Shown: in pieces, positions 1-64,000 of the stretch
How the letters are laid out: each line of letters starts with the position of its first letter
Numbering within the stretch: the first letter of the stretch is position 1
Source of the DNA: Lepidodermella squamata
Lineage: Eukaryota > Animalia > Gastrotricha
Assembly: GCA_047495785.1 (NCBI GenBank)
Contig: JBLDXI010000028.1
Span: forward strand, 1,488,001 to 1,552,000
Reading direction: 5' to 3'
Length of the DNA: 64,000 nt
Position numbers and translations under genes: made by a program
The notes under the pieces: model-generated
Told to the model about the DNA's origin: nothing
The model's database searches: none
The model's input: only the letters and a program-made list of their open reading frames with translations

Positions 1-930
1 GTGCTGATTTTTCCTTGGGACACTATCAGCAACCTGCCCTGCTAGAAACGTCAGAGCTAGTAGGATCGTCACGGCAAAAACTGGCCGATCAGGCTTTTCT
101 GGTGGCATAGCAAAACATAGTAGCTGCAAACCAGACAACAATGAAGAAGGTATCATCAGATGCATGACGTAGTAGTCAGGTCTCCGCCGCATGACAATTG
201 AAAAAGCGACTTCACTCCTATGATTGCCATCGATATCAACTTGGTATAAAGCATACGAGGAGTTCAATAAATCCCAGTTGTCATTCGAAGTCAAGAAGCT
301 GTCGAAAACTCGAAAATTAACAGGATAAGCAAACGCAACGGCCAAAGCGTTTTCTTGCATTGTAAACACGATTTTGCACTCTTGTTTATCGAAAGGGAAG
401 TGCTGAAGGTCGAACGAGCATTGCGAGAGAAAAGATCCATAGCGGTTCCAGGTGAATTCTATCGAATGTTTCGGCGGGTTGGTGTATTTGAGGAAAAACC
501 TATTCACAAACCCTTCGTTCATTCCGAAATTGCGAGGGGTGTTGCGATGATTAATATTGGGCTTCCAGAATAGGTCCTTGTCCAAGAATAAGATGAATTG
601 GTAATCAGGTGTATAAGCTGGGCACGGGATTGTCCATACAAACCGCAGAGAGGCAGACAGTGTGAATGTTTCCTGCAAATCATCGATATCGTCCAAATGC
701 TCCGGTTGCAGCATGACTGTTACATTGGTTGGCGAGCATGGATACCCGCGACCTTGGCCTCTAATGCAAGTGGGCGTGTAAATTTCGGGGATAATGTTTG
801 GACATTTCTGCAGCAAATTGAAAGTTTGCTGTTTTGTGAGGCGTTCCAAGTTGTTTACATCAAGCAGGATTTGACCATAACCTGACGATGACGAGAATAT
901 TAAGACTGATATAATCAGCAAATTTTTCAT
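1..930 (-). CDS. Divergent pLGIC (Cys-loop/nAChR-like) subunit #1, 3' end runs off the window
   Basis: Not in the ORF track; translated by hand from ATG at 930: MKNLLIISVLIF (signal peptide)...KCPNIIPEIYTPTCIRG...C...WTIPC...FWKPNINHRN...CSFDLQHFPFDKQEC (Cys-loop)...M1...PDRPVFAVTILLALTFLAGQVADSVP (M2). The frame stays open to position 1. Confidence 0.92.
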   Translation of the reverse strand, partial: MKNLLIISVLIFSSSSGYGQILLDVNNLERLTKQQTFNLLQKCPNIIPEIYTPTCIRGQGRGYPCSPTNVTVMLQPEHLDDIDDLQETFTLSASLRFVWTIPCPAYTPDYQFILFLDKDLFWKPNINHRNTPRNFGMNEGFVNRFFLKYTNPPKHSIEFTWNRYGSFLSQCSFDLQHFPFDKQECKIVFTMQENALAVAFAYPVNFRVFDSFLTSNDNWDLLNSSYALYQVDIDGNHRSEVAFSIVMRRRPDYYVMHLMIPSSLLSGLQLLCFAMPPEKPDRPVFAVTILLALTFLAGQVADSVPRKNQH

Positions 931-960
931 TAAGAAGACGATGTTCAGGGCTAGATCCGA

Positions 961-968
961 TTATATAT
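961..968 (-). promoter_or_regulatory. Putative TATA box for pLGIC #1
   Basis: ATATATAA on the minus strand about 30 nt upstream of the ATG at 930. Confidence 0.45.
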
Positions 969-3173: not shown

Positions 3174-4337
3174 ATGCTGAGCCGTTATCTTTTTTTGTTG
3201 ACGCCAACTTTCGTTTTGAGCGTAAAATCAAAGCCTGACGAAGAATTTATCGCCAACTGTTCGCAGTTTGGCAAGACAGTCTATACACCGACCTGCGTCG
3301 AAGGACGTTACATGACCGGGGAAGACTGTTCGCCAACTCAAGTTCAAATAACATTTATACCCCAACGCTTTCATGAAATCAACGATGTCTCCGAGACACT
3401 GACCATTTCTGGTTCTCTTGCTCTTTCATGGGAGGTCGACTGTGACAACTACTCCCTCCCCAAAGAGAGAACATTCTACATCGACGAAGACCTAGTTTGG
3501 AAACCACACATGCACCACAAGAATGCCATGCTAGATTTCGGCCTGACGCAAGGTTTTACTAGCAGGTTGTACGTATGGTACGTCTCTGATCGTTCAATCT
3601 ACGATCTCGAGGCAAACGTCCTGGTTTTCTGGCAAAGAGTTGGCGTATTCACATCCCACAGCCCGATGGATTACGAATACTTCCCGTTCGATAACCAGAT
3701 TTGTGAAATTGTTTTCGTAATGCAGGAGCATCAAAATGGCTCAGTATTCAAGCTGACACAATTCTCAAAAGTTGAGTCCTACTTCATGTCGAACAGCCAC
3801 GGAACTGGATGGACCTATGTTGGGTGGAGCGCGAAGGAAGCTTTCATCAATGTGAACGGCAATCGCAGTGCTGCTGTATTTGCGATGCATTTCAAACGAA
3901 AGCCTGAGTATTACGTTTACTACTTGATGGTTCCAATTCTTCTGCTAACTATCCTCGAACTAGCTGGGTTCATCATTCCGCCGAGGATTCCTGACAGGCC
4001 AATCTATCAAGTCACAATCTTACTCGCAATGACGTTTCTCCAAGGTGAGATATTGCAGAGAGTGCCTCAAAAATCACAGAGGATTTTTTTGAATAATTAC
4101 ACGGATATTTCAGCAATTATTTGCTGGAGTAGCACGATTTATTCCTTGGCCATTATGGCTTTTGTGACAACTTACAAGAAGTGGTACAGTACCCCTCTTC
4201 AGTCGAAATTTATGTCGAAATTCAGTCTAACGCCAGCCAGGATTGCAGATTTAGCTGCTGCTTGTTTTATGATTTTTATATTTTTAGGCAATAATTCTTA
4301 TGCGATTTCAATAGCTAAAGAGCGTGGGTGTTTCTAA
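3174..4337 (+). CDS. Divergent intronless pLGIC subunit #2 (first Cys-loop Cys replaced by Ser)
   Basis: Signal peptide, WKP motif, SPMDYEYFPFDNQIC loop, KRKPEYY pre-M1, PDRPIYQVTILLAMTF M2, four TM helices. Confidence 0.93.
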   Translation: MLSRYLFLLTPTFVLSVKSKPDEEFIANCSQFGKTVYTPTCVEGRYMTGEDCSPTQVQITFIPQRFHEINDVSETLTISGSLALSWEVDCDNYSLPKERTFYIDEDLVWKPHMHHKNAMLDFGLTQGFTSRLYVWYVSDRSIYDLEANVLVFWQRVGVFTSHSPMDYEYFPFDNQICEIVFVMQEHQNGSVFKLTQFSKVESYFMSNSHGTGWTYVGWSAKEAFINVNGNRSAAVFAMHFKRKPEYYVYYLMVPILLLTILELAGFIIPPRIPDRPIYQVTILLAMTFLQGEILQRVPQKSQRIFLNNYTDISAIICWSSTIYSLAIMAFVTTYKKWYSTPLQSKFMSKFSLTPARIADLAAACFMIFIFLGNNSYAISIAKERGCF

Positions 4338-4531: not shown

Positions 4532-6943
4532 TTAATTGGATCCTCCCATCATCTGCTTCGATGAACCCGAGAATACGCCGATTTTGGAGTTTTCAACCTT
4601 TGCCACCGGCCATCGATTCGACCAAACTGGGTAGTTCAATATCAGATAGATGGAGTTGGAATACATAAGTGACCCAACCACAACGACCGTGATTTGATTG
4701 ATTTCAGATCCCGACATTAGATAGACAATCAGAAGGAAAGCAAAGTAAATGGTTGTTGCGTTTCCTATTGCCATTCTTTGAAGGTTACTTTCGAACTTGT
4801 AAAACACCAGCGGTGTCTTGAGCTTGGTCCGACTGTCGTAAGCGAAGAAACAGCTGACAAGTAGGATGAAGCCATTTATACCTATTATTGCTCCAAGCCA
4901 CGAGAATTCATCTCCTGAGCTGCAGAAATAATTTTTGATGTCATAATACGAGTCAAGATTTTCGTCGAAGCTAACAGGTGTGGTTGAATGCCCAACTTTG
5001 AAGGGATCAACTCCGAATATCCAAATCAGTACAACAGCTAGGATACACGTAGAAGCAAGGAAGGATGCGAAGGACTGCAGTCTTTTGGACGTTGGCACTC
5101 GCTTGCTCATGTGACTGTTGAAATCAGCTGCAGTTATGCTATTGGCTTTGCTCTGAGACATTAGGTTTCTCAGAGATCGCATGATATCGCGTAACCCAAA
5201 CATTCGGACCAGCATCACTAGATTGCAAATTGTTATACCTATGGACGTGAACAACGGGCGAATCTGGCATAAAGCATCTGGGTAGTACGAAATTTCTAAC
5301 AGCAACAAAATTGCTCCCAAGTCTAGGATTACACACCCGAACAGAAGGAGAGAATTCGTTGGACAGTCGAAAAAGAAGATGAATTTTTCTCGATTAGCAT
5401 TCCGAGACAGCGAAAGATAAATCGACACATGCGTTATTGTTGAAGCTATAGCGATCGATAATAACACGCCAAAGGACGACGCTGGGAACTCGGATGATAG
5501 GTGGATTACCTGGGACAGGTCTTTGGGGGGCTGTCCAGACTTGGTATACCAAACTGGGGCACTCATTGGAGTCAGTTTCCAAGTACTAGCGTTTTTCAGT
5601 GTTCTGATGTCATTATCAGTTCGAGTGATTTTGTAGACAATACGAACAGATCCAGGAACCTGCTGTACTACGAAAACGTCTTCGTTGTCGATCAGCAAGC
5701 GTTCAGAAAATCGAATCCTTCCAACCCTTAAACCAACAAAATCCGTCAAAGCTGTACTGGCATTTACAACGTGCCGGACCAAATCTGGATTAGTCGAAAA
5801 GTCTTTCAAGCTCATGTTGTACTTTTCCCGTAGTACGGCTTCGCTTCTGTTCAAGGCTAGGATGGTACCCATAGCTGCGTCATGGCAGATGTGCCTTTGA
5901 TTCATATCCCCGACTCTTGTGCCGTTTAGCTCTCTGGCTAGATAGGCTTCGAAATAATCGTTATCATAGCCAAATGAAGTCGGTTCGAATTTTTCCCAAG
6001 CAAACTGAACCAAACCGAAGAAAAAGGTAACCTTCAGCATTTCGGCTATCATTAACCTTGTACAGCCTGGTATCAATGGCAAGCTGGGATCGGCAGCTGT
6101 GGTATAGGCGAAGAAATTAACGATGTAAACGTAGTAAGGAGCTGTCATGCCGGCATTGTACGCTAAGCAGAGAAACTTCACGTAGTTCGCCCCGATATTC
6201 CCATGAGCCATTACAATGACTCGCGCCCCGCTAGATTTGATGGCATCAATCACATCTTGATTCACCTCGGGTTCACTTCCGAAATAGGGCACGTCAATGT
6301 CATTCTCAGCGAAAATGTTCTGTAGCATTCGCCCGAAAATGTCGTCATTGGCATTTGCTGATGACGTGAATATAGCCATTTGATTCCATCCACCAACTTT
6401 TCTCGCGAACAGCGGAATGAGGTTGCCAATATTTTCGTAAGGTCCCTGGGCTCGATACAAGTGGTTATACAAGTTCCGTCTTGCAATAAGAATAGGGCCA
6501 GCGCACCCTTCGGCAAACTGAATGAACTTGTTGACCTTGACTGTCAGTGCATTGGCTAGAAAAGAGCTTTTTTACATTCTATTTTCGAAAAATGACCTGG
6601 AAAACTTACTCTGACAAGCTAACGAAGTTCCAATCACCATAGGAGACATGTAGGAATTGTTCATTAGATTTCCTTCAAACTCCCATAAGAAGTTCACAAA
6701 ACTCTGAGAGGCTCTTGCCGCAGCTGATCCTTCATCTTTGAGTACCATCCGAATGTGATAATCCGGCAGAATGTCGTTGCGTGAATTCACCGTATCAATC
6801 ACTAATTTAGCCGCCGCGCTGCAAGCCGTCGGAATATTTGGGCTGCTCAATGGCATCATATTCAACATAACTAGCTCATTGGGCTTTCTTGACTGGGCAA
6901 ATGCAAAAGCGTGAATGCAAACCAGTATAATATAGCGAGACAT
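4532..6943 (-). CDS. Class C GPCR, GABA-B receptor-like (Venus flytrap + 7TM), 2 exons, ~785 aa
   Basis: Exon 1 6943-6610, GT-AG intron 6609-6556, exon 2 6555-4532 join in frame (ACQ-T-NALTVK). Signal peptide, VNSRNDILPDY VFT motif, seven hydrophobic helices with TM3 and ECL2 Cys, no cysteine-rich domain. Confidence 0.9.
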
Positions 6944-7777: not shown

Positions 7778-8956
7778 TTACAAATTCCCGGTTCTATTCA
7801 TTGTTACTACCCAGTGTAGGACAATTCCGAGGTACCAGGCGAGAAAAATCAGGAATACAACGCAATCAATCAGCCTGTGGCGTTTTATGCGTCTCAGAGC
7901 GCCTTCTTTCATTACAGGCTGCTTGAACCATTCTTTAAACGTATTCGAATAGCCGCAGCTTACCAGAAAATATAACGTGTTAATCCAAACGAAGAGCTGG
8001 CACAAATCGGTGAAGGTCAATATGTGTACTTGCTCGGTTTTCGGCGGCACCCGATCTAGAATTTCACCCTGAAAGAATATCAAGGTCAGCAGGATCGTAA
8101 TACCAAACACAGCCCGGTCAGCAGCAGTTGGCGATATAGCAAAGGCCGATAGTTCTAACAAAGCGAGCATAGCGCATGGCAGCATTAAGTGGTAGATATA
8201 AAATATCGGGTTTCGTTTCATTAGAAAAGCAGTTTCGAAAACTGTCAGATTTCGCCCGTTCTTCTCCGATTTATAGTAAGATCTATAACTTCCATTTTCG
8301 GAGTACCAGTTGTCATTTGAACCGGAATAGCTGTCTTTGAATCTTACAAATGAGTCGTTTGTGAATGAGACGATTTCACTGGGCTCGTCGAGAGCCAGCT
8401 CGACCACACAAGTTTGGTTATCAAATGGGAAGAGCGTGAAGTCCAAATCGCATAAAGCCGTCATTGCGCCAACTTTTCGCCACCTAAATGTAAATCTTTG
8501 ATCAACTAGACTATACCAGATCTCCATATCTTCTACAAAACCATCAGTCATCTCGTTGTTAAAGACAGCATTTTGATGGTAGAGATGCGGCTTCCACAAA
8601 GCCGCTGGATCCACGCGAGTTCGGAAGTCAGCGCCTGGTTTGTAAGACTCGCACTCTATTGTCCATGTCGCCGTTATCCAAGCAGATAACGTGTATGCCT
8701 CATCCTCATCGTCTACGTTCCACAGATAAGCTGGTTCGTATAGGATCGCTATACCAAGAGGTTTACATCCCTCCTTGTTGAGCTGGCCACGTGGGCATAG
8801 AGGCGTATAACTCTCCGGTGATAGATGTGAACAGTTGCGTAACAGCTCAATTGCTGCTCTGTTGGTTAGCGAAGTAAGCTCGTTACCAACGGCGAACAAA
8901 ACCAGGGCCGAGAGAGATAACAGCAAGAAGAAAACAGCTTTCAATTTAAATAACAT
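7778..8956 (-). CDS. Divergent intronless pLGIC subunit #3
   Basis: Signal peptide, CDLDFTLFPFDNQTC Cys-loop, ADRAVFGITILLTLIF M2, 4 TM; close paralog of 12763-13941. Confidence 0.93.
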   Translation of the reverse strand: MLFKLKAVFFLLLSLSALVLFAVGNELTSLTNRAAIELLRNCSHLSPESYTPLCPRGQLNKEGCKPLGIAILYEPAYLWNVDDEDEAYTLSAWITATWTIECESYKPGADFRTRVDPAALWKPHLYHQNAVFNNEMTDGFVEDMEIWYSLVDQRFTFRWRKVGAMTALCDLDFTLFPFDNQTCVVELALDEPSEIVSFTNDSFVRFKDSYSGSNDNWYSENGSYRSYYKSEKNGRNLTVFETAFLMKRNPIFYIYHLMLPCAMLALLELSAFAISPTAADRAVFGITILLTLIFFQGEILDRVPPKTEQVHILTFTDLCQLFVWINTLYFLVSCGYSNTFKEWFKQPVMKEGALRRIKRHRLIDCVVFLIFLAWYLGIVLHWVVTMNRTGNL

Positions 8957-11385: not shown

Positions 11386-12543
11386 TCAAAAAACACCATG
11401 TTTAAACATTGTGTCAATAGCGTAGATAATTATTCCAAGAAAAGCCAAGAAAGCGAATGAAAACATTGCTTTATCAAGCAGCCGATGCCTGGGAATGGCA
11501 AACAGGAACGGGTGCACTTTGATCGGCGTTAGGAAGTGGTCTCGTTTAGCCTTTGAATATCCACAGCTAATCAGGAAATAAATCGTACACACCCAAGAGA
11601 ATAGCTGGCACATGTCCGCAAAATTTAGGATGAAGACTCTTTCAGACTTCGGAGGCACTCTATCTAAAATCTCTCCTTGAAAGAACGTATGGGCTAGCAC
11701 TATAGATATAGCGAATATTGGTCGATCCGGGAGAGAAGGAGACATCGCGAAAGCCGTCAGCTCAAGGAAAGAAAGAAATACGCATGGAATCATGATATGA
11801 AAGATGTAGTAGGTAGGGTTGCGACGAAATTCTAGGGTGAAAGCTATTTCGCTATGGTTTGAACCATCTATCTCAACCATACTTAGCTCATAGTTTAAGT
11901 TGAAGACGCGCCATTTATCATTTGAACTTGGAAACTCTGCTGTTGTCTGAATCACAGTCTTTTCAGTGAAACGAACAGATTCAACTGTTTCTTGCATAGT
12001 GAAGACTAAATTGCAACTCTGCGAGTCGAAAGGAAAGTAATCGTAGTCCATTTGACAGTGGGATGAAAATGCCCCATAGCGGGTCCATGTGAAGTTCAAA
12101 GATGAATCATTCTCCGAGAATTCCATGAAGAACCGATTTGCGAATCCTTCAACCACGCCAAAGTTTCTCGGCGTCTTTTGCTGGTTTATACTTGGCTTCC
12201 AAATCGCGTCCAAATCAACGTACAGCAACCTTGAATTGTTGATCTTATAACCCGGGCAAACGACCGGCCATGTAAGATCCAGGTAGGCTATCACAGTGAA
12301 ATGCTCAGACATGTCATCGACCTCTCCAAATCTTTCAGGCTCGAATGAGATCGTCACATTGGTCGAGTCACAAATTCCACCTTCGCCAGGGCCGAAAACG
12401 CAAGTTGGGGCGCAGATTTCTCTCGACAAATTCGGGCACTTTCTCAGCAAATCTATCGTCCAGTAATTAGTGAGCTGGACCAACTCATTACCTCTTGTCA
12501 ATGCGATGAAAAAAGAGCAGAAAATAAAGTCAGCTTTCATCAT
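11386..12543 (-). CDS. Divergent intronless pLGIC subunit #4
   Basis: CQMDYDYFPFDSQSC Cys-loop, RRNPTYY pre-M1, PDRPIFAISIVLAHTF M2. Confidence 0.93.
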   Translation of the reverse strand: MMKADFIFCSFFIALTRGNELVQLTNYWTIDLLRKCPNLSREICAPTCVFGPGEGGICDSTNVTISFEPERFGEVDDMSEHFTVIAYLDLTWPVVCPGYKINNSRLLYVDLDAIWKPSINQQKTPRNFGVVEGFANRFFMEFSENDSSLNFTWTRYGAFSSHCQMDYDYFPFDSQSCNLVFTMQETVESVRFTEKTVIQTTAEFPSSNDKWRVFNLNYELSMVEIDGSNHSEIAFTLEFRRNPTYYIFHIMIPCVFLSFLELTAFAMSPSLPDRPIFAISIVLAHTFFQGEILDRVPPKSERVFILNFADMCQLFSWVCTIYFLISCGYSKAKRDHFLTPIKVHPFLFAIPRHRLLDKAMFSFAFLAFLGIIIYAIDTMFKHGVF

Positions 12544-12762: not shown

Positions 12763-13941
12763 TTACAGATTCCCGGTTCTATTCATAGTCACTACCCAGT
12801 GTAGAACAATCCCCAAGTACCAGGCGAGAAAAATCAGGAATACAACGCAATCAATCAACCTGTGGCGTTTTATGCGTTGAAGAACGCCTTCCTTCATTAC
12901 AGGTTGCTTGAACCATTCTTTAAACGTATTAGAATAGCCACAGCTTATCAAAAAATAGAAGGTGTTAAGCCAAATAAACAATTGGCACATATCTGTGAAG
13001 GTCAATATGTGCACTTGCTCGGTTTTAGGCGGCACACGATCCAAAACTTCACCCTGGAAGAAAATTAACGTTAGCAGGATCGTAATTCCAAAAACAGCTC
13101 TGTCAGGGGCAGTTGGTGTGATAGCAAAAGCAGCTAGGTCCAACAACGCCAGCAAAGCACAAGGCAACATCAAGTGATATGTGTAGAATATAGGGTTTCG
13201 CTTCATATATAACAGCGCTTCGAATACCGTGAAATTACGCCCGTCCTTCTCCGCGACGTAATAGGATCTATGATTTCCTTTATCCGAGTACCATCTATCA
13301 TTTGATTCCGAATAGCTGTCTTTGAACCTCACTAAAGAGTCGCTGGAGAATGTGACAAGCTCACTAGGGTTGTCTAGTGCAAGCTCGACCGCACAGGTTT
13401 GGTTATCAAACGGGAAGAGCGTGAAGTCCATGCTACATAAAGCGGTCATATCGCCAACTTTCTGCCATTCGAAGGTTACAATTTGAGATGCTGAACTGAA
13501 CTCAATCTCCAATTCTTCTTTGAAGCCATCATCCATCTCGTTGTTGAAGATAGTATTTTGATGGTAGAGATGCGGCTTCCATAATGCGTTAGGATCAACT
13601 GGAATTTTGAAATCATATCCTGGTTTGTAGGACGCGCACTCCACTTGCCATGTCGCCGTTATCCAAGCAGATAACGTGTAGGCCTCATTCTCATCGTCGA
13701 CATCCCACAAATAAGCTGGTTCATATAGGATTGTTACGTCCATAGATTTACATCCTTCCTTGTTAAGCTGGCCTCGTGGGCATAGAGGCGTATAACTTTC
13801 CGGTGATAAATGTGAACAGTTGCGTAGCAATTCGATTGTTGATCTTTTTGTTAACAATGTAAGTTCATTTCCAAAGGCAAACAATACCAGGCTCGAGAGA
13901 GACAAAAGCAAGGAGAAAACAGTTTTCAAGGTAATTATCAT
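12763..13941 (-). CDS. Divergent intronless pLGIC subunit #5
   Basis: ORF extends to 13989; Met at 13941 (MIITLKTVF) aligns with the start of paralog #3; CSMDFTLFPFDNQTC Cys-loop; 4 TM. Confidence 0.92.
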   Translation of the reverse strand: MIITLKTVFSLLLSLSSLVLFAFGNELTLLTKRSTIELLRNCSHLSPESYTPLCPRGQLNKEGCKSMDVTILYEPAYLWDVDDENEAYTLSAWITATWQVECASYKPGYDFKIPVDPNALWKPHLYHQNTIFNNEMDDGFKEELEIEFSSASQIVTFEWQKVGDMTALCSMDFTLFPFDNQTCAVELALDNPSELVTFSSDSLVRFKDSYSESNDRWYSDKGNHRSYYVAEKDGRNFTVFEALLYMKRNPIFYTYHLMLPCALLALLDLAAFAITPTAPDRAVFGITILLTLIFFQGEVLDRVPPKTEQVHILTFTDMCQLFIWLNTFYFLISCGYSNTFKEWFKQPVMKEGVLQRIKRHRLIDCVVFLIFLAWYLGIVLHWVVTMNRTGNL

Positions 13942-15119
13942 GGGTAGAAATTGCGTAAGAATATTCTTAGTTTTTAGGAGTGTGTTCATATGTTGTTTGC
14001 TAAAACCTAAAAATGCCGTTCGACCCGGTTTCGAGGTACTGTTTACTTTGCGTAACGCTAAAGCTTGCTAAATAGATATGCTACATATAGAAGTAAAATA
14101 TTGTCACGCTCTCTTTCGTCAGGCTAATCGGCTGTCAGTTAAGAATCTAGAGCAAGTCTATTATTGGCGCTTCCTAAGTGCTTGCTTCCAGTTTTCCTTG
14201 CACATGATTATTGAAGTCGGATAAAAGTATAAGTAGTCAGTAGTCGTGAATCCTAGCAACAATTTTCAAAAACAGTTTACAAATATTTGAGGCGCGAGAG
14301 CTTTGTTTCATATGAACGCTGTGAGTCAGTCTCTGACGCTGTTACTACTTATCATGGCGTGAATTAGATGAAACGGTTAATGAATTGAATGCTAATATTT
14401 GAGGCCTATGATGTCCGGGCTATTGTTGTCTTGATAGCCAACAGCTAACGCGTAATCTCGGATAAAGTTGGCTAAAATGGGCTTCAGACACGAGATGGCT
14501 CGCAGGCTGGTAATTCACCCGGTTACTTTTCTCCCGGTGACAAGGTTCATACTTCATTGGAATAGAAATTTTCTAGTTTGAGAAAGGACATCGCATTCTC
14601 AAACCAGTGTTATAATGTTGCGCTTCTTTCGAGGCAAATTCCGGTGGTGTTCGGTTCAACATAAACGCACGATTATTACGGTCTAATCGGCCTATCTCTG
14701 CAATCGATTAGTGTTCCTTCCCGAAGTTTTATGAAGTTTCATTGTCAAGATTTCTGTCCCAGTAGATTTAACCACGGTATCACTAATATGCTTGTTTATT
14801 AAACGCAGTGAATTCATTTGACAGAAGAATGATTTTTCTAGATTTGCCCAAACTTGGAAGGGAGCTTTTATTATTCGCATGTTTTAGTCAAATTCGCGGC
14901 CTTTGCTCCCTCGCTATTGGTGATGTTTGATCAGTATTGAACGTGAACTCAATCGCGAACCAAAAATGGCCATTTTGTTCAATAGAGACAAAAATGCATG
15001 TTTAAATAGTGCATAATATTTTAATGCACTTCCGTTCTGCGCGAAGCCGCTTTTTGAGTAAACAGAAGGCTAACAACCGGCATCAGAATAAATATGATGT
15101 CATCAAACAGGTTCGAAAA

Positions 15120-35131: not shown

Positions 35132-35211
35132 TTAGCTGATGAAATCTCTGGAAAAATGAATGATAGAACTTGGTATAAAGCCAGCTGTTTAAACTTCATT
35201 TCATGTTTATT

Positions 35212-36360: not shown

Positions 36361-36461
36361 ATTGCCAGGAATAAAATTATCAAATTGTTCAGCCCTGGCT
36401 GGATTTCTCGTTGGACAGCTGAGCACACAAATTCTGAAACACGACACTTTTATTTCATGGC

Positions 36462-39086: not shown

Positions 39087-39098
39087 ATTTAATTCTAA

Positions 39099-40250: not shown

Positions 40251-40303
40251 AGCCTAAAAAAAAAGAAAAATTAAGTGCAATCAATAACTTTATTTGAACT
40301 TCG

Positions 40304-43434: not shown

Positions 43435-43503
43435 GATACCTTATATCATACAATGACTGGAAAAAGCACAGAAAATTCAATAGTAACAACAAAGCCTTTA
43501 TTT

Positions 43504-44631: not shown

Positions 44632-44853
44632 CTTCAGGCTAAATGAGATGGCTACAGGCAGAAGAACGCTTGGCGTAACTGAATCAACGTTTTATCGATG
44701 AAGTAAATACAGAAAGCATGCAATATCCGCGCGTGTGGCTCGAACAATTTGCTCCCATGGCGCAAGGTCTAGCAGTCTGGTTAGGTATTTCTGGAAATCA
44801 ATCATAAGCTAACTTATGAAGCCATGAGCACACTAAATTCCTGAAAGATTTAT

Positions 44854-49153: not shown

Positions 49154-51551
49154 TTATAGAGAGACGCCGCTATGTTTTGCGGAAAATACAGCAATTTTCG
49201 AGTGCTCCTTCTTCACCACCGGCCAACGATTCGACCATACAGGGAAATACATAATCATAAAATTCGAGCCGGAATAAAGCAGCGAGCCAACAATGAAAGC
49301 TGTCATCTGGTTATATTCAGACCCTGATCCCAGCAAGTAGACGATGAGGAGAAAAGCGAAGAAAATCGTAGTTGAGTTGACTATCGCCATTCGCAGCATA
49401 TTGCACTCGAAGTCATAGAAATGCAATATTTTCATTTTCGTCCGGCTGTCATAAGCGAAAAAGCAGCTGGCAAGTAGAATGAACGCATTCAATCCAATAA
49501 AAGCGGCAAGCCAAGAATACTCAGTCTCCGAAACACAAAATGAACTCGTGACATCGAAGTAAGAATCTAGAGCCTCGTCGAACATTACCTGCGAGGAAAC
49601 GTACTTCACAGAGAAAGCATCAACGGCGAAGATCCAAATGAAAACCGAAACAGCAACCAAACCTGAAATAATCGATCCGATTGCAATCTGGGCAAGTTTC
49701 GACTTAGGAACCCGCTTTTTCATGTGCTCTTTGAAGTCTGCCGAAGTAATGCTGTTAGCATCACTCTTGAACATTATGTCCTTCAAAGATCTCATAATGT
49801 CTCGTAAACCGAAAATTCGGACCATCATCACACTGTTACAAATTGTAACCCCAATCGGTATGAAAAGAGCCCGAATCTTACATAGATATTGCTGGTAGTA
49901 CGCCAATTCCAAGAGGATGAGAATTGAACCAACGTCGAGAACGAAACAACCGAAGAGAAAAAGGAAATTTGTCGGAAAGTTGAAGTAAAATATGAAGTGA
50001 TCTCGATTAACTCTCTTTCGTAAAACAGCGAGGATCGAGATTTGTAAAGGAATTAGAGCCGCAGATATGAATGTCAAAATCCCGAATGTAGCTGAAGGAA
50101 AGCTGGTAACGAGATGAATTACGCTTGACAAATCTTTCGGAGGCTGGCCTGATTTCGTAAACCAAATCGGTGGGTTGATTGGTAATATCTTGTATCCAGT
50201 TGATTTTGAGTCATTATCCGCCCGAATTATTTTATAAATGATGCGAACAGCGCCAGTAATCGGCTGAACCACGAATACATCTTCATCATCGATGAGCAGA
50301 CGCTCCGAGAATTTGATCCTACCAACCCTCAGTCCGATGAAGTCAGTCGCTGCGGTGCTTTCGTTGACAATTCTTCGAACCAAGTCTGGGCTTGTTTCAA
50401 AGTCTTTCAAGCTCATGTTGTACCTTTTTCTAAGCTCTGTTTCGCTTCGGTTTAGAGCTAAGACTGTACCCATAGCGGCGTCGTGACAGATGTGTCTTTG
50501 CCCGATATCGTTAACCCGAGTTCCATTGAGCTCCTTTGACAAGTAAGCTTCAAAGCCATCGATATCGTAACCGAAGGGCGTTGGTTCGAATTTCTGCCAA
50601 CCAAACTGAACCAGGCCGAAGAATAGCGTGACTTTCATCATCTCGGCTATCATAGCCCTCGTACAGCCGGGTATCAACTGCAATCCCGGATCGTCGGCAG
50701 TTGTGTAGGTGAAAAAATTAGCGATGTACAGGTAGTACGGAGCTGTCATGCCAGCGTTGTAAGCTAAACACATAAACTTCACGTACAACCCTGGTTGACC
50801 ATGAGCTGACACGATTATTCTGGCCCCACTTGCTTTGATGTTGTCCATGACAGCTGGAGTCACATCAGCCTCACTTCCGTAGTAAGGAACGTCAATACTT
50901 TGTTGGGCGAAGACAGTTTGAAGCATACGCCCGAATATATCATCATTCGCGTTTGCTGATGATGTGAAAATTGCCATTTGCTTCCATCCACCAATTTGCT
51001 TAGCGAAAATCGGGATCAAATTAGCCATATTTTCATAGGGCCCCTGGGCTCGATAGAGATGATTGAACAAGTTACGTCTCGCGATGAGAGTAGGCCCAGC
51101 ACATCCTTCAGCAAACTGAATGAACTTGTTCGACTTGATAGCGAGTGCATTGGCTGAAAATAGTAGGTTTTGCATTTTAAATAGCTCAAAAGAATTTTTA
51201 AACCTTACTTTGGCAAGCGAGTGAAGTTCCGACGACAATTGGAGAAATGTATGAGTTATTCGATCTATTAATCTCAAACTCCCATAAGAAGTTGATGAAG
51301 CTTTGAGGTCCCTTCATCGCTGCTGGCCCCTCATCTTTTAGAACCATTCTTATGCGGTAGTCTGGCAACACGTCATTGCGGGAGTTGGCAGTATCGATTA
51401 CCAACTTTGCAGCCGTACTACAAGCGGTCGAAATATTCGGACCCGAAACAGGCATCATGTTCAGCATGACTAATTCATATGGTTTCGAGGGTAGGGCAGC
51501 ATTTACTTCAAGAGCAAATTGCATGAAGAAAATATAAACCAACAGCCTCAT
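49154..51551 (-). CDS. Class C GPCR, GABA-B receptor-like, 2 exons
   Basis: Exon 1 51551-51209, 55-nt intron 51208-51154, exon 2 51153-49154; appears closest to 4532-6943. Confidence 0.9.
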
Positions 51552-54271: not shown

Positions 54272-55788
54272 ATGAAAAACTCGCTGTTCATCAGCTCTTG
54301 GCTGCTCATGGTCACCATCGGGGCCCATTCGGCCGAAATAAAAGGGCTCAATCAAAAATTGCTGGTGATCTCATTCGACGGCTTTCGACGGCTTTATTTA
54401 GCCGATAACGATCTTCCAAACTTCAACGCCTTCGGGAAAAGCGGAGTGGTTTCCGAACTCACTCAAAGCGTCTTTCCTAGTGACACATTCCCTAATCACT
54501 GTAAGCACTGAGATTTATGTTATCAAGTTTTACTGTTGACTTTTCAGGGTCGATTGCCACTGGAATGTATTCTGAGAGCCACGGCATCGTCTCTAACAGC
54601 TTTTATGATCCGAAACTGAACAAAACATTCACCATGTCGAGCCTTGATACAGCTTTCTGGGACCAGGCTGAGCCTATCTGGATCGCAGCCCGACGAACGG
54701 GTAACAAGCGAACCGGGGTCTCCTTCTGGCCTGGTTCTGCCGTCAAATTCGAGTTGGGAACTCCTGACTTCTATCGAGAGGTCTACAACGACAAAGTGCC
54801 ATTCGAAGAAAGGATCAATGAAACGGTTCGCTATCTTTCGAAAGAGAACGTCGACCTTGCCCTGCTCTACCACAACGAGCCAGACAAAACTGGGCATGAT
54901 AATAAACCGGAATCCGACAAGGTGAAAAAGGTTCTGAAAGAAACTGACGATTACATGGGCAAGATTCTTAAATACTTGGAAGAAGCCGGCCTGAACCAGA
55001 ACAATTTGAATATCATCACTCTGGCTGATCATGGTATGGTTTACGTTGAAACTCGGCTGTATGTTGGCAATTATATCGATATGGCTAGCATTGAATATGT
55101 AAGCTGGATCTCTCAAACTCTTGTGAGTTTTGATACATTGTTATCACAATTTTTCAGCCGACGCAATATGGTGCGTCCATGGGTGTGAGACCTAAAGAAG
55201 GTCGAGCTGACGAGGTTATGGCAAATTTGACAAAAGCTAGTCAGGAAACCGGCCTCTTCAATGTCTATTGGAAGAAGGACGTGCCACTTGAATTTCACTA
55301 TTCAAACAACGATAGAATCACAGAAATTGTTATCATGTGTAAAGTCGGCGTTTACATGGCAAGAGTAAGTTCTTCATCGCTAAATCTTGTCAATCATTCT
55401 CTTTTCTTGTTAGTCTGCAAGCTCGTCAGGCGGCTCCTCTCATGGATTCGACCCAAAGGAATCCGTTATGCAACCTCTTTTCATGGCTCGCGGCCCGGCT
55501 TTCAAGCAGGGTGGCTTCAAAGCGACTCGAATGTTTGAAACGAAAGATATCTATGCCATCATGGCACATGTAACTGGTATTCAACCCGCTGCAACTAATG
55601 CCAGCCTGGAACGAGTTCGAGACCTCTTTGCTGTCGACCCTTTTGACCCGTCAGCCTCGACCTCCAAACAAACTACAACGAAATCTTTATCAGGCTCAAC
55701 TACTGCCAAATCGCGTGCTGATAACTTGAAGTACAACACTATTTTGATTTTCTGTTTCTTAGTTTTACATGTTGATATAGCCAAGTGA
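54272..55788 (+). CDS. Ectonucleotide pyrophosphatase/phosphodiesterase (ENPP4/5/6/7-type), copy A, 4 exons
   Basis: Introns 54501-54547, 55099-55157, 55365-55413. Motifs SFDGFR, DTFPNH (catalytic Thr), EPDKTGH, ADHGM, HGFD; signal peptide; Ser/Thr stalk and hydrophobic C-terminus (GPI/TM-like). Confidence 0.9.
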
Positions 55789-56368: not shown

Positions 56369-58187
56369 ATGTACAAAAAGTCACTTCTGATACATTTGGG
56401 GCTTTTTCTTGTATTTATCCTTGTCGACTCGGCTGAAAGAAAAGGACTGAATCAAAAGCTCTTGGTGATCTTATTTGACGGATTCCGCATACTCTATTTA
56501 ACTGAGAATGACCTGCCAACTTTTAAGGCCTTCGGGAAAAGTGGACTGATTTCCGAGCTTACTCGAAGCGTCTTCCCGAGCGACACCTTCCCTAATCACT
56601 GTAAGCAACTACTTTATGTTTTTAAGTTTTATCAGTGGTTTTGCAGGGTCTATTGTTACTGGAATGTATCCTGAAAGCCATGGCATCGTCTCCAACAGCT
56701 TTTACGATCCGAAATTGAACAAAACATTCAACGTCTCCAGCCACGATACCGCATTCTGGGATCAAGCTGAGCCTATTTGGATCGCAGCACGACGAACAGG
56801 TAACAAACGAACTGCATCATCATATTGGCCCGGTTCTGCTGTCAAATTCGAGTTGGGGTATCCTGACTTCTATACAACGGTCTACAACGACAAAGTGCCG
56901 TTCGAAGAAAGGATCAATGAAACGGTTCGCTATCTTTCGAAAGAAAACGTCGACCTAGCTCTGCTCTACCACAATGAGCCAGATTTCACCGCACACTACA
57001 ATAACCTTGAATCTGACGTGGTGAAAAAAGTTGTCAAAGCAGCGGATGATTACTTCGCCAAGCTTCTTAAATACTTGGAAGAAGCCGGTCTCAACCAGGA
57101 AAACTTTAACATTATCGCCCTTGCAGATCATGGAATGGTCAGCATTGAGAAGTTTTTATACGTGGGTGATTACGTTGATATGGCGAGCATTGAATATGTA
57201 AGTTGAATCTCTTGAATAACCATGAATCAGGTTTCACCATGAACATACCAGTAGTTATATAGCGAGCCAAATCGCAAGCGATGTTGAGTAAGTTGGATTT
57301 AGCGCTTACTCAATAAAAAACCCTGAAAACTGAACACGGTACTATATACGTTCGGGAATTTTCGATAGCAAATGTATTGGATTGGGTTGTTTCCGAACGT
57401 CATACCCAGTTTCATTTCACAACATTTCATTGGAACGAGATGCTTAAGTTGTCAATTCGTTAATAGTCAAATATTGCGCCATATTTTAGATTTTTTCCTT
57501 GTATTTTCTCAACTTCCGCAATTTATGAGAATTTTCTGTGAATTTTTTGCAGCCGGACATGTATGGTGCCTATATGGGGGTGAGACCCAAAGAAGGCCAG
57601 ACTAACGAGGTTATGGCTAACTTGACAAAAGCAAGTCTGGAAACCGGACTCTTCAATGTTTATTGGAAGAAAGACGTTCCGTTCGAATTACATTTTTCAA
57701 ACAGCGACAGAATACCCGAAATAATGATATTGTGTAAAATCGGCGTTTCCATTGATAGAGTAAGCACTATTCAACTTTCATAGTTGTTTACCGCTTTATG
57801 TTTTCCAATCATTCCCAGTCAAATAATTCGACTTTTAAGTCCACTCATGGATACGACCCCGAGGAAACCGTTATGCAACCTCTTTTCATGGCTCGCGGTC
57901 CAGCTTTTAAACAAGGCGGCTACAAAGTGACTCAAATGTTCGAGACGAAAGATATCTACGCAATCATGGCATATGTTACTGGTATTCAACCCGCTGCAAC
58001 TAACGCTAGCCTGGAACGAGTTCGAGACCTGTTTGCTTTCGACCCGTTTGACCCGTCGGCTTCGACTTCCAATCAACCTACAACCAAATCATTATCAGGC
58101 TTAACGACAGGAAAATCACATGCTGACTACTTAGCATACAACCCTGCTATTATGTTGATAGTTATGGTTATTAATTTTACGTTTTAA
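56369..58187 (+). CDS. ENPP-type phosphodiesterase, copy B, 4 exons
   Basis: Introns 56601-56646, 57198-57552, 57760-57818; metal-ligand motifs retained (FDGFR, TFPNH, EPDFTAH, ADHGM, HGYD). Confidence 0.88.
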
Positions 58188-59134: not shown

Positions 59135-59432
59135 CGAATTTACCCTCCAATAATAAATAGCGCGCTTTTTGTGTAATTACGTGGTTTTTTAGCGCTGTTT
59201 CGACGTTTTTGCTGTTTTGTCGCGTTTGCTGTTTCTTGACTATGATGTTATGTCGGTCTGCCGATTGCACATTACTCTGAATGCCTTAAGCCTTAATAAC
59301 ATAAAAAATAAAGTTTGAGTGTTAGAACTGCAATAACGCATTTTTTCAGCTGTTCCTTAAAAATACATACTGTATTGCTTGATGCAAGGCTTAATTCATC
59401 AATGCGAACACAAGTCATTCAAAACAGTGAAG

Positions 59433-61208
59433 ATGTTGTACAAAAAGTCACTTCTGGTACATTTGGGGCTGTTTGTTGTAGTTAACCTTGTCGATTCGGC
59501 TGAAATAAAAGGGCTGAATCAAAAACTCCTAGTGATCTCATTTGACGGATTCCGCAGACTCTATTTAACGGAGAATGACCTGCCAACTTTCAAGGCCTTC
59601 GGGACAAGCGGACTGATTTCCGAACTTACTCGAAGCGTCTTCCCGAGCGACACCCTCCCCAATCACTGTTAGTAATTGATTAAAGTTTTATAGTTCTACC
59701 ATTATATTTGCAGGGTCTATTGTTACTGGCATGTATCCTGAGAGCCACGGCACACATCTCGTGAGAGTGTAGGAAATGATATTAAAACTTACATATTCAA
59801 TGCTCGCCATATCAACGTAATCACCGATGAATATCATATTTTCTATGATCGCAGCTCGACGAACAGGTAACAAGCGAACTGCGGTATCGTATTGGCCCGG
59901 TTCTATGGTCAAATTCGAGATGGGGTATCCTGACTTCCACAGAGCGGTTTATGACACCAAGGTGACATTCGAAGAAAGAATCAATGAAACCGTGCGTTAT
60001 TTAGCGAGAGAAAACGTAGACCTGGCCCTCCTCTACAACAACGAGCCGGACTACGTCTCACATCAGAATAAACCGCAATCTGATACGGTGAAAAAATCTC
60101 TGAAAGCAGCGGATCAATACTTGTCCAAGATTCTTCGCTATTTGGAAGAAGCCGGTCTCAACAACGAGAACTTGAACATAATCACCCTTGCTGATCATGG
60201 GATGGCTATCATAGAAAATATGATATTCATCGGTGATTACGTTGATATGGCGAGCATTGAATATGTAAGTTTTAATATCATTTCCTGCTGTGTGTCTAAT
60301 ATCCCACAAGTTAAAACACTTTGCTGGAAAATGATCTACATCCCTCATCCATGCCTCATCCTATAAGCGCGATTTTACTGATTAAAAACAATAATTTAGC
60401 GGAAAACCCCGAAAAATCCAGTGGTATCTGGGCTAGACTTACATTAATATCTCCATCGATATATTGTTTCGGATTTTTTATTTCCAACGACAATAGTCAA
60501 TTCTCATGGCTTGGGTTTGAATCTATTTGGTCATTGCATACTATTTTCGTACTTCCGTTACTTTGTGGTAACTTGTTTGTAGCCGAACATGTTTGGTGCC
60601 TATGTGGGGGTAAGACCAAAGGTAGGACGAGCTGATGACGTTATGGCTAATTTGACAAGAGCAAGTCAGAAAACTGGCCTCTTCAATGTTTATTGGAAGA
60701 AAGACGTTCCGCTCGAATTACATTTTTCAAACAACGACAGAATCCCAGACATTATAATCTTGTGTAAAGTCGGAGTTTACATGCATAGAGTAAGCAATTC
60801 TAATCATTTTTTGGCCGCAATATGTTTTCCAATCATTTCTAGTCAGCAAACTCGTCTGGCAGCTCCTCCCATGGATACGACCCTGAAGAAACCGTTATGC
60901 AACCTCTTTTCATGGCTCGCGGTCCAGCGTTCAAGCAAGGTGGCTTTAAAGCGACTCGAATGTTCGAGACTAAAGATATCTACGCAATCATGGCATATGT
61001 CACTGGTATTCAACCCGCTGCTACTAACGCCAGCCTGGAACGAGTTCGAGACCTCTTTGTCGTCGACCCATTTGACTTTTCGATTAAAACTATTACGACA
61101 AAGTCGTTACCATGGTGGACGACTTCCCATGAATTACCCTCACTTGCGTATTTTATCTTTTGTGCATCACTTTCGCTCACATGTGTTATCACTTGTGTCT
61201 TTTTCTAA
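59433..61208 (+). pseudogene. ENPP-type phosphodiesterase copy C, disrupted in exon 2
   Basis: Same 4-exon layout as A and B, but 59752-59847 is replaced by non-homologous sequence with an in-frame TAG (59770-59772) and a later TAA. Confidence 0.8.
59771..60286. repeat. Perfect 79-nt inverted repeat (59771-59849 / 60208-60286)
   Basis: aggaaatgat...ttctatgat is the exact reverse complement of atcatagaaa...atcatttcct. Confidence 0.95.
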
Positions 61209-61294
61209 TGAAATGACACCAAGCATCCTTTATGTAGCTGAAAGCTGAATTCTTACTTTATTATATTTCAGAAGGGAAGATGAACTCACGTTTT

Positions 61295-62506
61295 CTATGG
61301 CTGAGATGTCATAGAAATTGGAGTAACATCAACATAACTGAGTGCAAAAACGTGAATAGCCATAAATGCGATTACAGCGATAAGAAGAGCAAAAAAGTCC
61401 ACTAAACGCCTACGCGATAATCGATATTGTGGTTTCAGGTGTCGAAAAAGCACACCGTTGAAGTACTCAGACTGTGAAGCGATCAATCCACAAAATACCA
61501 AAGAATACACGGTGCAAAGAACGGAAAACATAGCGAGCAGATCAACATAAGTTATCAGATAAATGCGTTGAGGTTTCACTGGCAGCCGAGTCAACGCTTG
61601 GTCGTGAAACATTGTAGCAGCTAGCAGTAATAGTGCTTGAAATATTGGTCTCTCAATTTTGTTCGGAGGAAGTAATAGAGCAATAATTTGCAAAGCTGCC
61701 AATACACAACAAGGATTCATAATGTTCGAAACGTAGAAAGAAGGATTCCTTTCAAAGGTGAACTCAAATGAGGCTAAACTGGCATTTTCGCCATTCAACT
61801 TCAAAACGTCAGTGTAATTGACAGTCCTCAGGAGAAACCAGTTGTCAGACGAGTCTAAAAGAAGTCGACCAGGAACAAAGCTCAACTCGGCTTTAGAAAT
61901 CACTCCTCCTTTGGTGGATTGTTGAATTATAAATTCAATAGAGCACGTTTGAGAATCGTAAGGAAAATCGGTCAATTTCATCTTACAAGTCGACCAGAAG
62001 TCACCGAAGTAAAGATAGTCGAAACTCATCATTCCGCCTGAATCGATTTTCATGTAAAATTGCTTGGTAAATGAGTCGAAATTTCCGCGTGAGTTGTAGT
62101 TGTGAACTAGAGGCCGCCAGAAGAAGCGTTCGTCGATGAAAATTGTAGTATCTTTGTCTTGCATATAACCAGGGCAAGGAATTTTCCAGGAAAGGCGTAA
62201 CGAGCCGCTAACAGCGAAAGTCTCTGCGAAATCGTCGATGCCTATTAGTTGATGCGGGGTGAATGTAAGTGTTGTGTTGACGGAATTGCAGAGCTTGACG
62301 TCCTGGAAATAGGCCATGAAGGAACACGTTGGCGATGAGTATTCTGGCGAAAGGTGAGGGCAGGCTTTCAGGATATCAGCTGTTTTCCCCCGTGTTACTT
62401 CATCAATAATTTCCATTGTAGTTTTCGACTGCATTGTTGTTCTTGCAACAATATTTGAAACGAAACAGCTGAGAATACTCAGAATAACCAAATAAATTTC
62501 AACCAT
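61295..62506 (-). CDS. Divergent intronless pLGIC subunit #21
   Basis: Likely start MVEIYLVIL; CKMKLTDFPYDSQTC; IERPIFQALLLLAATMF. Confidence 0.92.
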   Translation of the reverse strand: MVEIYLVILSILSCFVSNIVARTTMQSKTTMEIIDEVTRGKTADILKACPHLSPEYSSPTCSFMAYFQDVKLCNSVNTTLTFTPHQLIGIDDFAETFAVSGSLRLSWKIPCPGYMQDKDTTIFIDERFFWRPLVHNYNSRGNFDSFTKQFYMKIDSGGMMSFDYLYFGDFWSTCKMKLTDFPYDSQTCSIEFIIQQSTKGGVISKAELSFVPGRLLLDSSDNWFLLRTVNYTDVLKLNGENASLASFEFTFERNPSFYVSNIMNPCCVLAALQIIALLLPPNKIERPIFQALLLLAATMFHDQALTRLPVKPQRIYLITYVDLLAMFSVLCTVYSLVFCGLIASQSEYFNGVLFRHLKPQYRLSRRRLVDFFALLIAVIAFMAIHVFALSYVDVTPISMTSQP

Positions 62507-62952
62507 GCCTATTGAGTATGAAAACTTCAAAATTATACTGGCTAATATTTGCAAATTAGCTGTTGTTTTATTTTTGCTGTGAATGCCTAGGGGATCACAC
62601 TGTAAGCGGACTGCTTTGTTACACGGTCAGTCCTTAAATAATCGATTTTTTGATAGTGCAGCTTTTAAAAGCCTTCAGGCAAACATTATCGACGTAAACT
62701 AAGTGACGTTTAGCATAAAAGGGAGAGCAAGACTAAATCTACTACGCGGACCAGATCTGACCTGGTGAAAAAAGCCGCTAAAAAATAGCAGCGGAAACTT
62801 TTTCCTATATCAGCTCTTTTAAATTTAATTTGCCAAGTCCGGTGTAAGGTGTGAATTTTATTTACTGAAACTCGCATTACACTACACAGGTAAATCGCTA
62901 AATTCTTTATTCACCTTATCCCGATTGGACACCCTTTCGGCCACACGACTAG

Positions 62953-64000
62953 TCACGTAATTCGCAATACAACCGAGAAAAAGTAGACGTTGACGAGAAC
63001 ATAAAGGACCAAAGCAATAATGAAAACGAAAAGGTCAAGCAATCGATTGAACCTAATTGATAGAACGTTGATCCTGAGGCACAATCTCTTCCTCAAAAGG
63101 TCAGGCCGTTCTTTGAAAATACCGCAGGCTATGATCGAGTATACAGCGCATGACAGGGAATGGAAAAAACAGAAGTCTGTGTACATTGACATCAATGTTC
63201 TCTGCGGTTTCGGTGGGATAAAATTTAACATCTGGCATTGTAGTATAATCATTCCTATCAAGATAGCTGTCTTCAGTATCGCCCGTTCTGGTAGGAAAGG
63301 TGGTAGAAAAAATGCGATTAGCTGCATTCCAGATAGCACGCAATAAGGAAGCATGAAATTTGTAACATAAAAAGTTGGATTTCGGCGGAATTTCATGCTG
63401 AAAATTGCCGCTGCTCTTTTTATCTTGTCCATGTCCTTCGTGTCATACCAATCTTCGTAATTCAGAAACGTCCAGTCGAATTCTTCATGGTCAGTTTTGA
63501 AGTGGTTGTCCTTCTCAAGCCTTAGCTCAGTTTGAGAAAATTTTACTGCTTTCGCGTTCTCCTGCATCAAGAAATTGACGTTGCATTGATGGGAATCGAG
63601 TGGGAAGTGACGAAAATCAAGATCGCACGTCGAAACTACGTGGCCATAAAGAAACAGTGCGAAGACCAACTGCCCTTTTGCATCCACTCGGACAGTAAAA
63701 GTCCGCAAAAATCCGTCTAGAAACCCGAAATTATCACGCGAGTTTTGCTGGTAGATATGCGGAGTCCAGAAGAGTCGTTCATCCAAATAGTAAGCGGTAT
63801 CTTTCTCCCAGCCATGCTTCTTACATGGAATAATCCACTGGAAGCGGATTGATCCGGATAAGGACATAGTTTCAGCGGTTTGATCGATCGAGTTGAGCCG
63901 TTCAGGCTGGAGTCTTACAGTAACGTTAACGGGATAGCAATCGGATCTTCCAATTAGAGGACAGCTCGGGGAGTAAGTTTCAGGGGACAACATTGGGCAA
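62953..64000 (-). CDS. Divergent pLGIC subunit #22, 5' end outside the window
   Basis: Begins mid-motif (CPMLSPETYSPSC); CDLDFRHFPLDSHQC; PERAILKTAILIGMII. Confidence 0.9.
   Translation of the reverse strand, partial: CPMLSPETYSPSCPLIGRSDCYPVNVTVRLQPERLNSIDQTAETMSLSGSIRFQWIIPCKKHGWEKDTAYYLDERLFWTPHIYQQNSRDNFGFLDGFLRTFTVRVDAKGQLVFALFLYGHVVSTCDLDFRHFPLDSHQCNVNFLMQENAKAVKFSQTELRLEKDNHFKTDHEEFDWTFLNYEDWYDTKDMDKIKRAAAIFSMKFRRNPTFYVTNFMLPYCVLSGMQLIAFFLPPFLPERAILKTAILIGMIILQCQMLNFIPPKPQRTLMSMYTDFCFFHSLSCAVYSIIACGIFKERPDLLRKRLCLRINVLSIRFNRLLDLFVFIIALVLYVLVNVYFFSVVLRIT

Follow-up and report, generated by a model that had tools for sequence, protein, structure and literature searches.

What kind of receptor is encoded by the dense array of ion channel genes in the gastrotrich Lepidodermella squamata, and for which use would so many copies have been kept? 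The array lies in positions 1,488,001 to 1,552,000 of contig JBLDXI010000028.1 (assembly GCA_047495785.1), and this whole stretch of 64 kb, analysed at its full length, is called the window here. A six-frame open reading frame (ORF) scan together with tblastn searches using the window's own proteins detected 22 loci, all of a single family of pentameric ligand-gated ion channels (pLGICs). With a probability of about 0.8, we consider the window to be part of a very large repertoire of orphan pLGIC subunits, which would be complete channels with ligands other than acetylcholine and a diversified pocket.

The Pfam domain Neur_chan_LBD was found above its curated cutoff in all six members tested. 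Single uninterrupted ORFs account for 21 of the 22 loci; the remaining gene, 15120–16502 on the plus strand, contains two GT-AG introns of 56 and 52 nt. Complete members measure 374–409 aa and no stop codon interrupts any of the 22 frames. Since the first and last loci (1–930 and 62953–64000) are truncated by the window ends, the array continues beyond both sides. An initial annotation made from the bare sequence had counted 22 genes, 21 of them intronless and none with a nonsense codon, with complete members of about 375–410 aa and an array running off both ends; the ORF scan and tblastn searches confirmed each of these points. The channel loci are as follows.

1–930, minus strand: pLGIC cut by the window start, N-terminal ~306 aa present; found by tblastn as an open frame, grouping in the tree with 11386, 7778 and 12763
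3174–4337, plus strand: intronless orphan pLGIC, 387 aa, first Cys-loop Cys lost (ORF, Pfam, alignment)
7778–8956, minus strand: intronless orphan pLGIC, 392 aa, forming the youngest pair with 12763–13989 (80% identity)
11386–12543, minus strand: intronless orphan pLGIC, 385 aa
12763–13989, minus strand: intronless orphan pLGIC, 408 aa
15120–16502, plus strand: sole intron-bearing pLGIC, 424 aa, introns at 15529–15584 and 16122–16173
19812–20936, plus strand: intronless orphan pLGIC, 374 aa
20949–22097, minus strand: intronless orphan pLGIC, 382 aa
22289–23518, minus strand: intronless orphan pLGIC, 409 aa counted from the signal-peptide ATG
24886–26043, plus strand: intronless orphan pLGIC, 385 aa, 9' Val
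31722–32696, plus strand: family member without M1-M2, hence without the pore-lining helix
33974–35131, minus strand: intronless orphan pLGIC, 385 aa, the member modelled below
35212–36360, minus strand: intronless orphan pLGIC, 382 aa
36462–37622, minus strand: intronless orphan pLGIC, 386 aa
39099–40250, minus strand: intronless orphan pLGIC, 383 aa, covered by sequencing run X2; 12 synonymous and 3 non-synonymous allelic variants
40304–41467, minus strand: intronless orphan pLGIC, 387 aa, deepest coverage in run X2
42244–43434, minus strand: Cys-less pLGIC, 396 aa
43504–44631, minus strand: Cys-less pLGIC, 375 aa, zero coverage in run X2; 8 non-synonymous and 6 synonymous variants
44854–46014, minus strand: Cys-less pLGIC, 386 aa
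51836–53038, minus strand: Cys-less pLGIC, 400 aa, sister to the other three Cys-less genes (94/97)
61295–62506, minus strand: intronless orphan pLGIC, 403 aa
62953–64000, minus strand: pLGIC with its N-terminus beyond the window end

Could these channels respond to acetylcholine? The 22 window proteins were aligned to a canonical nicotinic acetylcholine receptor (nAChR) alpha subunit from Haliotis (P0001) which carries the full acetylcholine site. Neither the loop-B Trp nor the vicinal Cys pair of loop C was present in any of the 22, as the initial annotation had proposed, and Gln occupied the former position in 12 of them. Loop C is about 8–10 residues shorter than in the reference and is gapped at its Tyr positions, the loop-A Tyr was found in only one protein and the loop-D Trp in two, and no aromatic box of any known transmitter type is conserved. 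The tip of loop C carries an N-glycosylation sequon in 13 of 20 window members.

When the family profile was compared with the sequences of the PDB, the nAChR alpha6, alpha7 and beta2 subunits were matched at ~1e-30 and 5-HT3A at ~1e-22, and no anionic receptor was found among the best 60 matches. This nAChR-first ranking places the family in the cationic nAChR/5-HT3 branch. Together, the alignment and the profile matches firmly support the assignment of the window genes as predicted non-cholinergic channel subunits of the nAChR branch from which the acetylcholine site has been lost.

The remainder of each protein is that of a compact subunit: a signal peptide, an N-terminal segment with extra cysteines, a beta-sandwich ectodomain and M1-M4, with almost no cytoplasmic domain. 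The M3-M4 loop is just 20–30 aa long; it had been described as short, correctly, at a slightly too generous 25–35 aa. Both cysteines of the Cys-loop, 13 residues apart around a near-invariant FPFD motif, are present in 16 of the 22 proteins, with both lost in four and one lost in two. Additional ectodomain cysteines were detected, three before beta1 and one after the conserved beta2 Trp, and for two of these extra cysteines conservation exceeds 90% among 75 family members of different organisms. In M2, Arg is found at 0' in all 21 proteins with this segment, Asp or Glu at -1' in 19, Leu at 9' in 19 (Val or Ile in the other two) and Thr at 6' in most. The channels are predicted to be probably cation-selective, since Asp-Arg at -1'/0' is similar to the Glu-Arg pair of 5-HT3A, which we take to be cation-selective with this pair at these positions. 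Gene 31722–32696 shows a clean in-frame loss of M1-M2.

The AlphaFold2 model of 33974–35131, computed from a 75-sequence alignment, reached a predicted local distance difference test score (pLDDT) of 93.7 and a predicted template modelling score (pTM) of 0.86. It superposed on solved nAChR and GABA-A subunits with Z-scores of 27–28 and deviations of 2.1–3 Å over ~320–335 residues, so that 33974–35131 can be regarded as a complete pLGIC subunit. Assignment to a subfamily by structure search was dropped, as GABA-A and nAChR chains scored alike.

Conservation among the window paralogues is unevenly distributed along the protein. Mean column identity is high in the Cys-loop (0.53), loop A (0.51), the beta1-beta2 loop (0.45), M2 (0.45) and M2-M3/M3 (0.41), and low in loop B (0.25), loop C (0.23), loop F (0.21) and the M3-M4 loop (0.13). 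Earlier it had been stated that the extracellular loops are divergent and the transmembrane regions conserved; this holds for loops B, C and F and for the membrane segments, but conservation extends to loop A and the Cys-loop. The paralogues have kept the pore and the parts linking binding to gating, and have diversified in the walls of the orthosteric pocket. Such a map is compatible with a repertoire of putatively working channels which differ in ligand specificity. The identical pattern is observed between ordinary pLGIC subfamilies and is thus not specific evidence for chemoreception. In the mechanism that we propose, the subunits would assemble as homo- or heteropentameric channels, which ligands other than acetylcholine would open at the rebuilt subunit interface, with different paralogues presumably binding different ligands.

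Where else does this family occur? When 1.84 billion cluster representatives were searched exhaustively with the profile, 246 proteins were returned at E ≤ 1e-30, and metagenomes hold more than 100 cluster representatives of the family. Among the relatives with a single domain scoring at least 135 bits, all those looked up proved to be unnamed ORFs of ENA metagenome assemblies or of Logan contigs, and no annotated family member was found among the 30 library matches with checkable database names. Proteins with a single domain of at least 135 bits are ~370–420 aa long or carry N-terminal extensions; the ENA members P0020, P0055, P0088 and P0119 have 200–750 aa ahead of the channel domain. The best outside identity to any window pLGIC is 40%. 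The metagenome scaffolds again show intronless, tandem genes, with a run of three genes on L001 and four genes within 21 kb on L003, and identical family proteins were recovered from two metagenome assembly sets and one Logan run. On L003 (ENA ERZ23486787 scaffold_661), which carries these four family members, two small genes at 960–1514 and 13133–13693 match Pfam Anti-LPS-SCYG. Crustaceans and horseshoe crabs are the animals in which this family (anti-lipopolysaccharide factor/scygonadin) is best known, and it may hint at the organism behind the scaffold.

A word-indexed search was nearly blind to the family, with three weak Haliotis matches for one protein and five matches for the 75-sequence profile. 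A broad bilaterian family, comprising bivalve proteins, Bulinus, the hemichordate Glandiceps and UniRef T1JBH7 (presumably Strigamia, read from its accession), was considered and rejected: per-domain scores of these named matches were 95–124 bits, and a canonical Haliotis nAChR scores alike. The named matches are of the canonical type, with the Trp, the Cys pair in some, GEK motifs and long cytoplasmic loops. The top rank of bivalve proteins in the library search came only from fused multi-domain gene models, whose domain scores are summed.

Two maximum-likelihood trees were built, a quick one of 151 rows and a careful one of 72 rows, both without the chemotactile receptors (CRs) of cephalopods. 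The window genes and the metagenome and Logan ORFs formed one clade (100/100, branch 0.83) apart from all canonical-type sequences sampled, which include molluscan and hemichordate ones; bivalve domains fell outside it. No 1:1 orthologue of a known conserved subfamily was seen in the trees, in line with the best external identity of 40%. The 21 intronless window genes belong to a 100/97 clade with 12 metagenome sequences, and the intron-bearing gene 15120–16502 lies outside this clade, at the unresolved base of the family. Judging from the tree, some subfamilies appear to predate the split from the metagenome organism. Physical neighbours cluster together: 7778/12763/11386/1–930; 33974/35212; 36462/39099/40304; 3174/20949/22289/24886; and 31722/61295/62953. 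That neighbours are tree sisters indicates growth by local tandem duplication.

The four Cys-less genes form a single clade (94/97) nested among Cys-containing neighbours, which indicates that the disulfide was lost once and secondarily. This nesting rules out a Cys-less ('Pro-loop') eukaryotic pLGIC lineage in which the disulfide would be ancestrally absent.

The topology is compatible with a putative course of events in which an intron-bearing ancestor, similar to 15120–16502, would have given rise to a retrocopy, probably by retroposition, followed by stepwise local tandem duplication. Purifying selection would then have kept the family over a long time.

How does the family compare with known expansions? 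The CRs of cephalopods, octopus CRT1 and squid CRB1, are nAChR-derived, intronless and tandemly expanded, have lost acetylcholine-binding residues and form pentameric cation channels (PMC11526382, PMC13174522). The window family resembles them in its nAChR-branch origin, its intronless tandem arrays, its lost acetylcholine site and its predicted architecture of a pentameric cation channel. It differs in the extra N-terminal cysteines, the shortened loop C with its frequent sequon and the 20–30 aa M3-M4 loop, and no CR chain was found among the 60 best PDB sequence matches of the family profile, whereas alpha7 was present. Function has been demonstrated for the CRs and is putative for the window family. 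The CRs constitute a cephalopod-enriched clade within molluscan nAChRs, whereas the window family is a 100/100 clade separate from the molluscan sequences sampled; for this reason, an origin independent of the CRs appears likely, and the PDB ranking likewise speaks against a place within the CR clade. The initial annotation had proposed a comparable, probably independent case: the likeness in gene structure stands, and independence is the parsimonious reading of a tree without CR sequences.

Massive lineage-specific expansions of nAChR-like genes, many of them intronless and in tandem, were described in bivalves and annelids and attributed to retroposition and tandem duplication (PMC6896357, Jiao et al. 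2019). The pattern is the same as in the window, but bivalve domains fall outside the family clade, the largest bivalve or annelid array reported has 12 genes (PMC6896357) against 22 in 64 kb, and the host genome of the window family is far more compact. The vertebrate alpha7, alpha6 and beta2 nAChR subunits and 5-HT3A, the closest solved proteins by sequence, share the fold, FPFD, the 9' Leu and the acidic -1'/basic 0' pair with the window proteins at ~20–22% identity; unlike them, the window family carries the extra N-terminal Cys motif and is without the aromatic box, the loop-C Cys pair, the membrane-associated (MA) helix and the long cytoplasmic loop. The family profile also matched PDB entry 8bx5 at 1e-26, which we take to be the orphan pLGIC 'Alpo' from Alvinella. 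Alpo and the nematode orphan LGCs are invertebrate pLGICs with non-canonical binding sites and with ligands that are unassigned or re-tuned. A specific relatedness of these channels to the window family is not evident. To our knowledge the nematode LGC and Alpo genes bear introns, and we know of no array among them with the density of the window.

Are the genes maintained? Most paralogue pairs are 25–45% identical and all frames are still open. For the youngest pair, 7778–8956 and 12763–13989 (dS 0.82), dN/dS was 0.15. Taken separately, the mature ectodomain of this pair gave 0.18 and M1-M3 gave 0.05, so that selection is purifying. The DNA run X1 showed even depth and two haplotypes over a 6-kb stretch, which excludes an assembly artefact for the part of the array examined. 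Between the X1 haplotypes, 33 coding differences were listed, 21 synonymous and 12 non-synonymous, and 21 fell at third codon positions; allelic variants thus show a roughly five-fold deficit of amino-acid changes. Together, these data firmly support that the pLGIC genes are an old, large and selectively maintained family. Constraint may be relaxed in the Cys-less gene 43504–44631, where non-synonymous variants outnumber synonymous ones (8 to 6) and where, unlike at its neighbours, X2 coverage is zero.

Run X2, labelled 'RNA?' and dated 2015, covers 39200–42800 at ≥99% identity and has zero coverage over 42801–45000. Its depth rises to 20 on 40304–41467 and is 6–10 on 39099–40250. This uneven coverage, with two or three of five genes covered, is the pattern expected from transcription of some genes, which is the probable interpretation; at least two genes appear to be transcribed. 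Most pLGIC genes have an AATAAA 10–70 nt past the stop codon. The minus-strand stretch 33974–46014 contains eight same-strand channel genes with gaps down to 53, 69, 80 and 101 nt and an AATAAA after each stop. A polypyrimidine-AG acceptor is seen just 5' of several ATGs (39099–40250, 42244–43434, 33974–35131 and 44854–46014). The spacing in 33974–46014 is thus operon-like, with candidate trans-splice acceptors.

The array is not pure. Interspersed among the channel genes are four class C (GABA-B-like) G protein-coupled receptor (GPCR)-like ORFs, a lipocalin, a Rab6-like GTPase and three ENPP-like genes. Canonical GT-AG introns in the window are 47–56 nt long, its GC content is 42%, and Rfam and tRNA scans of the 64 kb gave zero matches. 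The receptor ORFs are as follows.

4532–6472, minus strand: class C (GABA-B-like) GPCR ORF, Pfam 7tm_3 and ANF_receptor
28111–30018, plus strand: divergent class C GPCR-like ORF, 23–25% identical to the other three (Pfam, paralogy)
46270–48297, minus strand: class C GPCR-like ORF (paralogy)
49154–51277, minus strand: class C GPCR-like ORF (Pfam, paralogy)

All four have a Venus-flytrap and a seven-transmembrane domain, and a cysteine-rich domain was not seen. The ORFs 4532–6472, 46270–48297 and 49154–51277 are mutually 57–66% identical, and a word-indexed search of 5.8 billion proteins returned no relatives of the class C GPCR. Co-duplication of channel and GPCR genes as a block was rejected on the identities, which are 57–66% for the GPCRs and 25–37% for the flanking channels.

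The lipocalin (33184–33834, plus strand, 216 aa; Pfam Lipocalin_2, E 6e-15) lies within the receptor array. In some animals, lipocalins carry odorants. A divergent ORF for a Rab6-like small GTPase (38550–39086, plus strand; best PDB match Rab6, E 7e-33) is flanked by two channel genes of the other strand. ENPP-type phosphodiesterases are encoded by three genes in tandem at 54272–55788, 56369–58187 and 59379–61208 on the plus strand (Pfam Phosphodiest, E down to 2e-45); their introns are small (one checked: 47 nt, GT-AG), and the third copy appears split across several frames. Two paralogous multi-exon genes are found at 16880–18010 and 18893–19665 on the plus strand. One ORF of this pair contains a C-x-x-C-R-x-x-K-C motif which resembles the second zinc finger of nuclear receptors; the Pfam scan was empty, and a nuclear-receptor identity is only tentative.

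Several points weigh against reading the window as a repertoire of working, ligand-diversified channels. The predicted cation selectivity rests on few residues, two window pLGICs have no acidic -1' residue and the -2' Pro resembles the PAR motif of anion channels. Gene 31722–32696 is without M1-M2. For all members, ligand, current and cell-type expression are only predicted. The sole pair young enough to measure, 7778/12763, is under purifying and not diversifying selection, and the scarcity of pseudogenes and the age of the paralogues are less typical of the fast birth-and-death arrays of chemoreceptors. Finally, the library type of X2 was guessed as RNA, its coverage has no silent stretch to be compared with, and a gap in Logan contigs does not prove absence.

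What, then, might the channels be used for? A putative outward-facing chemosensory role is the single most likely use, and we advance it tentatively. The subunits would act on sensory cells as peripheral ionotropic receptors for environmental chemicals, in an independent parallel to the CRs of octopus and squid, and the interleaved GABA-B-like GPCRs and the lipocalin might be part of the same sensory toolkit. At the gene level, the window family shares published traits of the CRs, as both are nAChR-derived, intronless and expanded with an altered acetylcholine pocket (PMC11526382, PMC13174522). Variability is greatest in the pocket loops, the family has a large repertoire with more than 100 cluster representatives in metagenomes, other receptor genes are interleaved in the window, and only some genes are covered in the bulk probable-RNA run. 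However, the site of expression and the ligand are predictions, the ectodomain dN/dS of 0.18 in the young pair shows constraint, pseudogenes are almost absent and paralogues are old. Moreover, the GPCR paralogues, at 57–66% identity, are younger than the channel paralogues, the two families were not duplicated as a unit, and local duplication alone can cluster receptor genes.

A more far-reaching version of the chemosensory proposal is doubtful. It would see here a second, independently evolved nAChR-derived chemoreceptor family, paired with the co-located orphan GABA-B-like GPCRs in one ionotropic and metabotropic chemosensory locus; this family would be far larger than that of cephalopods, with dozens to hundreds of genes per genome, in a poorly sampled lineage of small aquatic animals.

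On the other hand, the channels could be internal receptors (synaptic, neuromodulatory or epithelial) whose endogenous ligands would be amines, amino acids, peptides, protons, ions or the like instead of acetylcholine, and would then resemble many orphan or re-tuned nematode LGC channels. We regard this as possible, if rather unlikely. The gating machinery and the pore are strongly conserved, purifying selection has been strong and long-lasting, and deep subfamilies that also occur in a different organism from metagenomes suggest stable, old functions. Nematode pLGIC expansions with re-tuned transmitter specificity are also well documented. However, at least 22 paralogues at one locus, and hundreds in the family, exceed the needs of any known transmitter system, the missing cytoplasmic domain is the usual segment for synaptic clustering and trafficking, and a conserved aromatic box of a known transmitter type is absent.

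That the genes are mostly non-functional retrogene copies or non-channel proteins (decoys, adhesion or immune/stress proteins), as suggested earlier for part of the bivalve nAChR expansion, is highly improbable: M1-M2 is gone from one member and the Cys-loop disulfide from four, 43504–44631 combines its excess of non-synonymous variants with zero X2 coverage and the expanded bivalve genes are responsive to stress and pathogens (PMC6896357), but all 22 frames are open at 25–45% paralogue identity, dN/dS is 0.05 in M1-M3, the pore residues are kept, polymorphism is mostly synonymous and the AlphaFold2 model is a confident full channel fold.

The reading as a large repertoire of orphan, non-cholinergic channel subunits is retained at the strength given above. 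An intronless tandem expansion of nAChR-like genes is of a known kind, since bivalves and annelids have such expansions as well (PMC6896357); what is new here is the clade, with its minimal subunit architecture and the density of the array. Even if the sensory reading fails, a deep pLGIC clade with strong support, with no annotated member among the 30 matches checked by name and with abundant members in marine metagenome assemblies, marks a gap in current pLGIC classifications. Structural biology would gain a compact channel of ~380 aa with almost no cytoplasmic domain and a naturally diversified pocket. Neurotransmitter receptors have become chemoreceptors several times, as ionotropic receptors from ionotropic glutamate receptors, trace amine-associated receptors from amine receptors and cephalopod CRs from nAChRs. 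If the chemosensory reading is true, the window family would be a second nAChR-derived case, with a minimal subunit and a much larger repertoire, and this evolutionary route would be repeatable.

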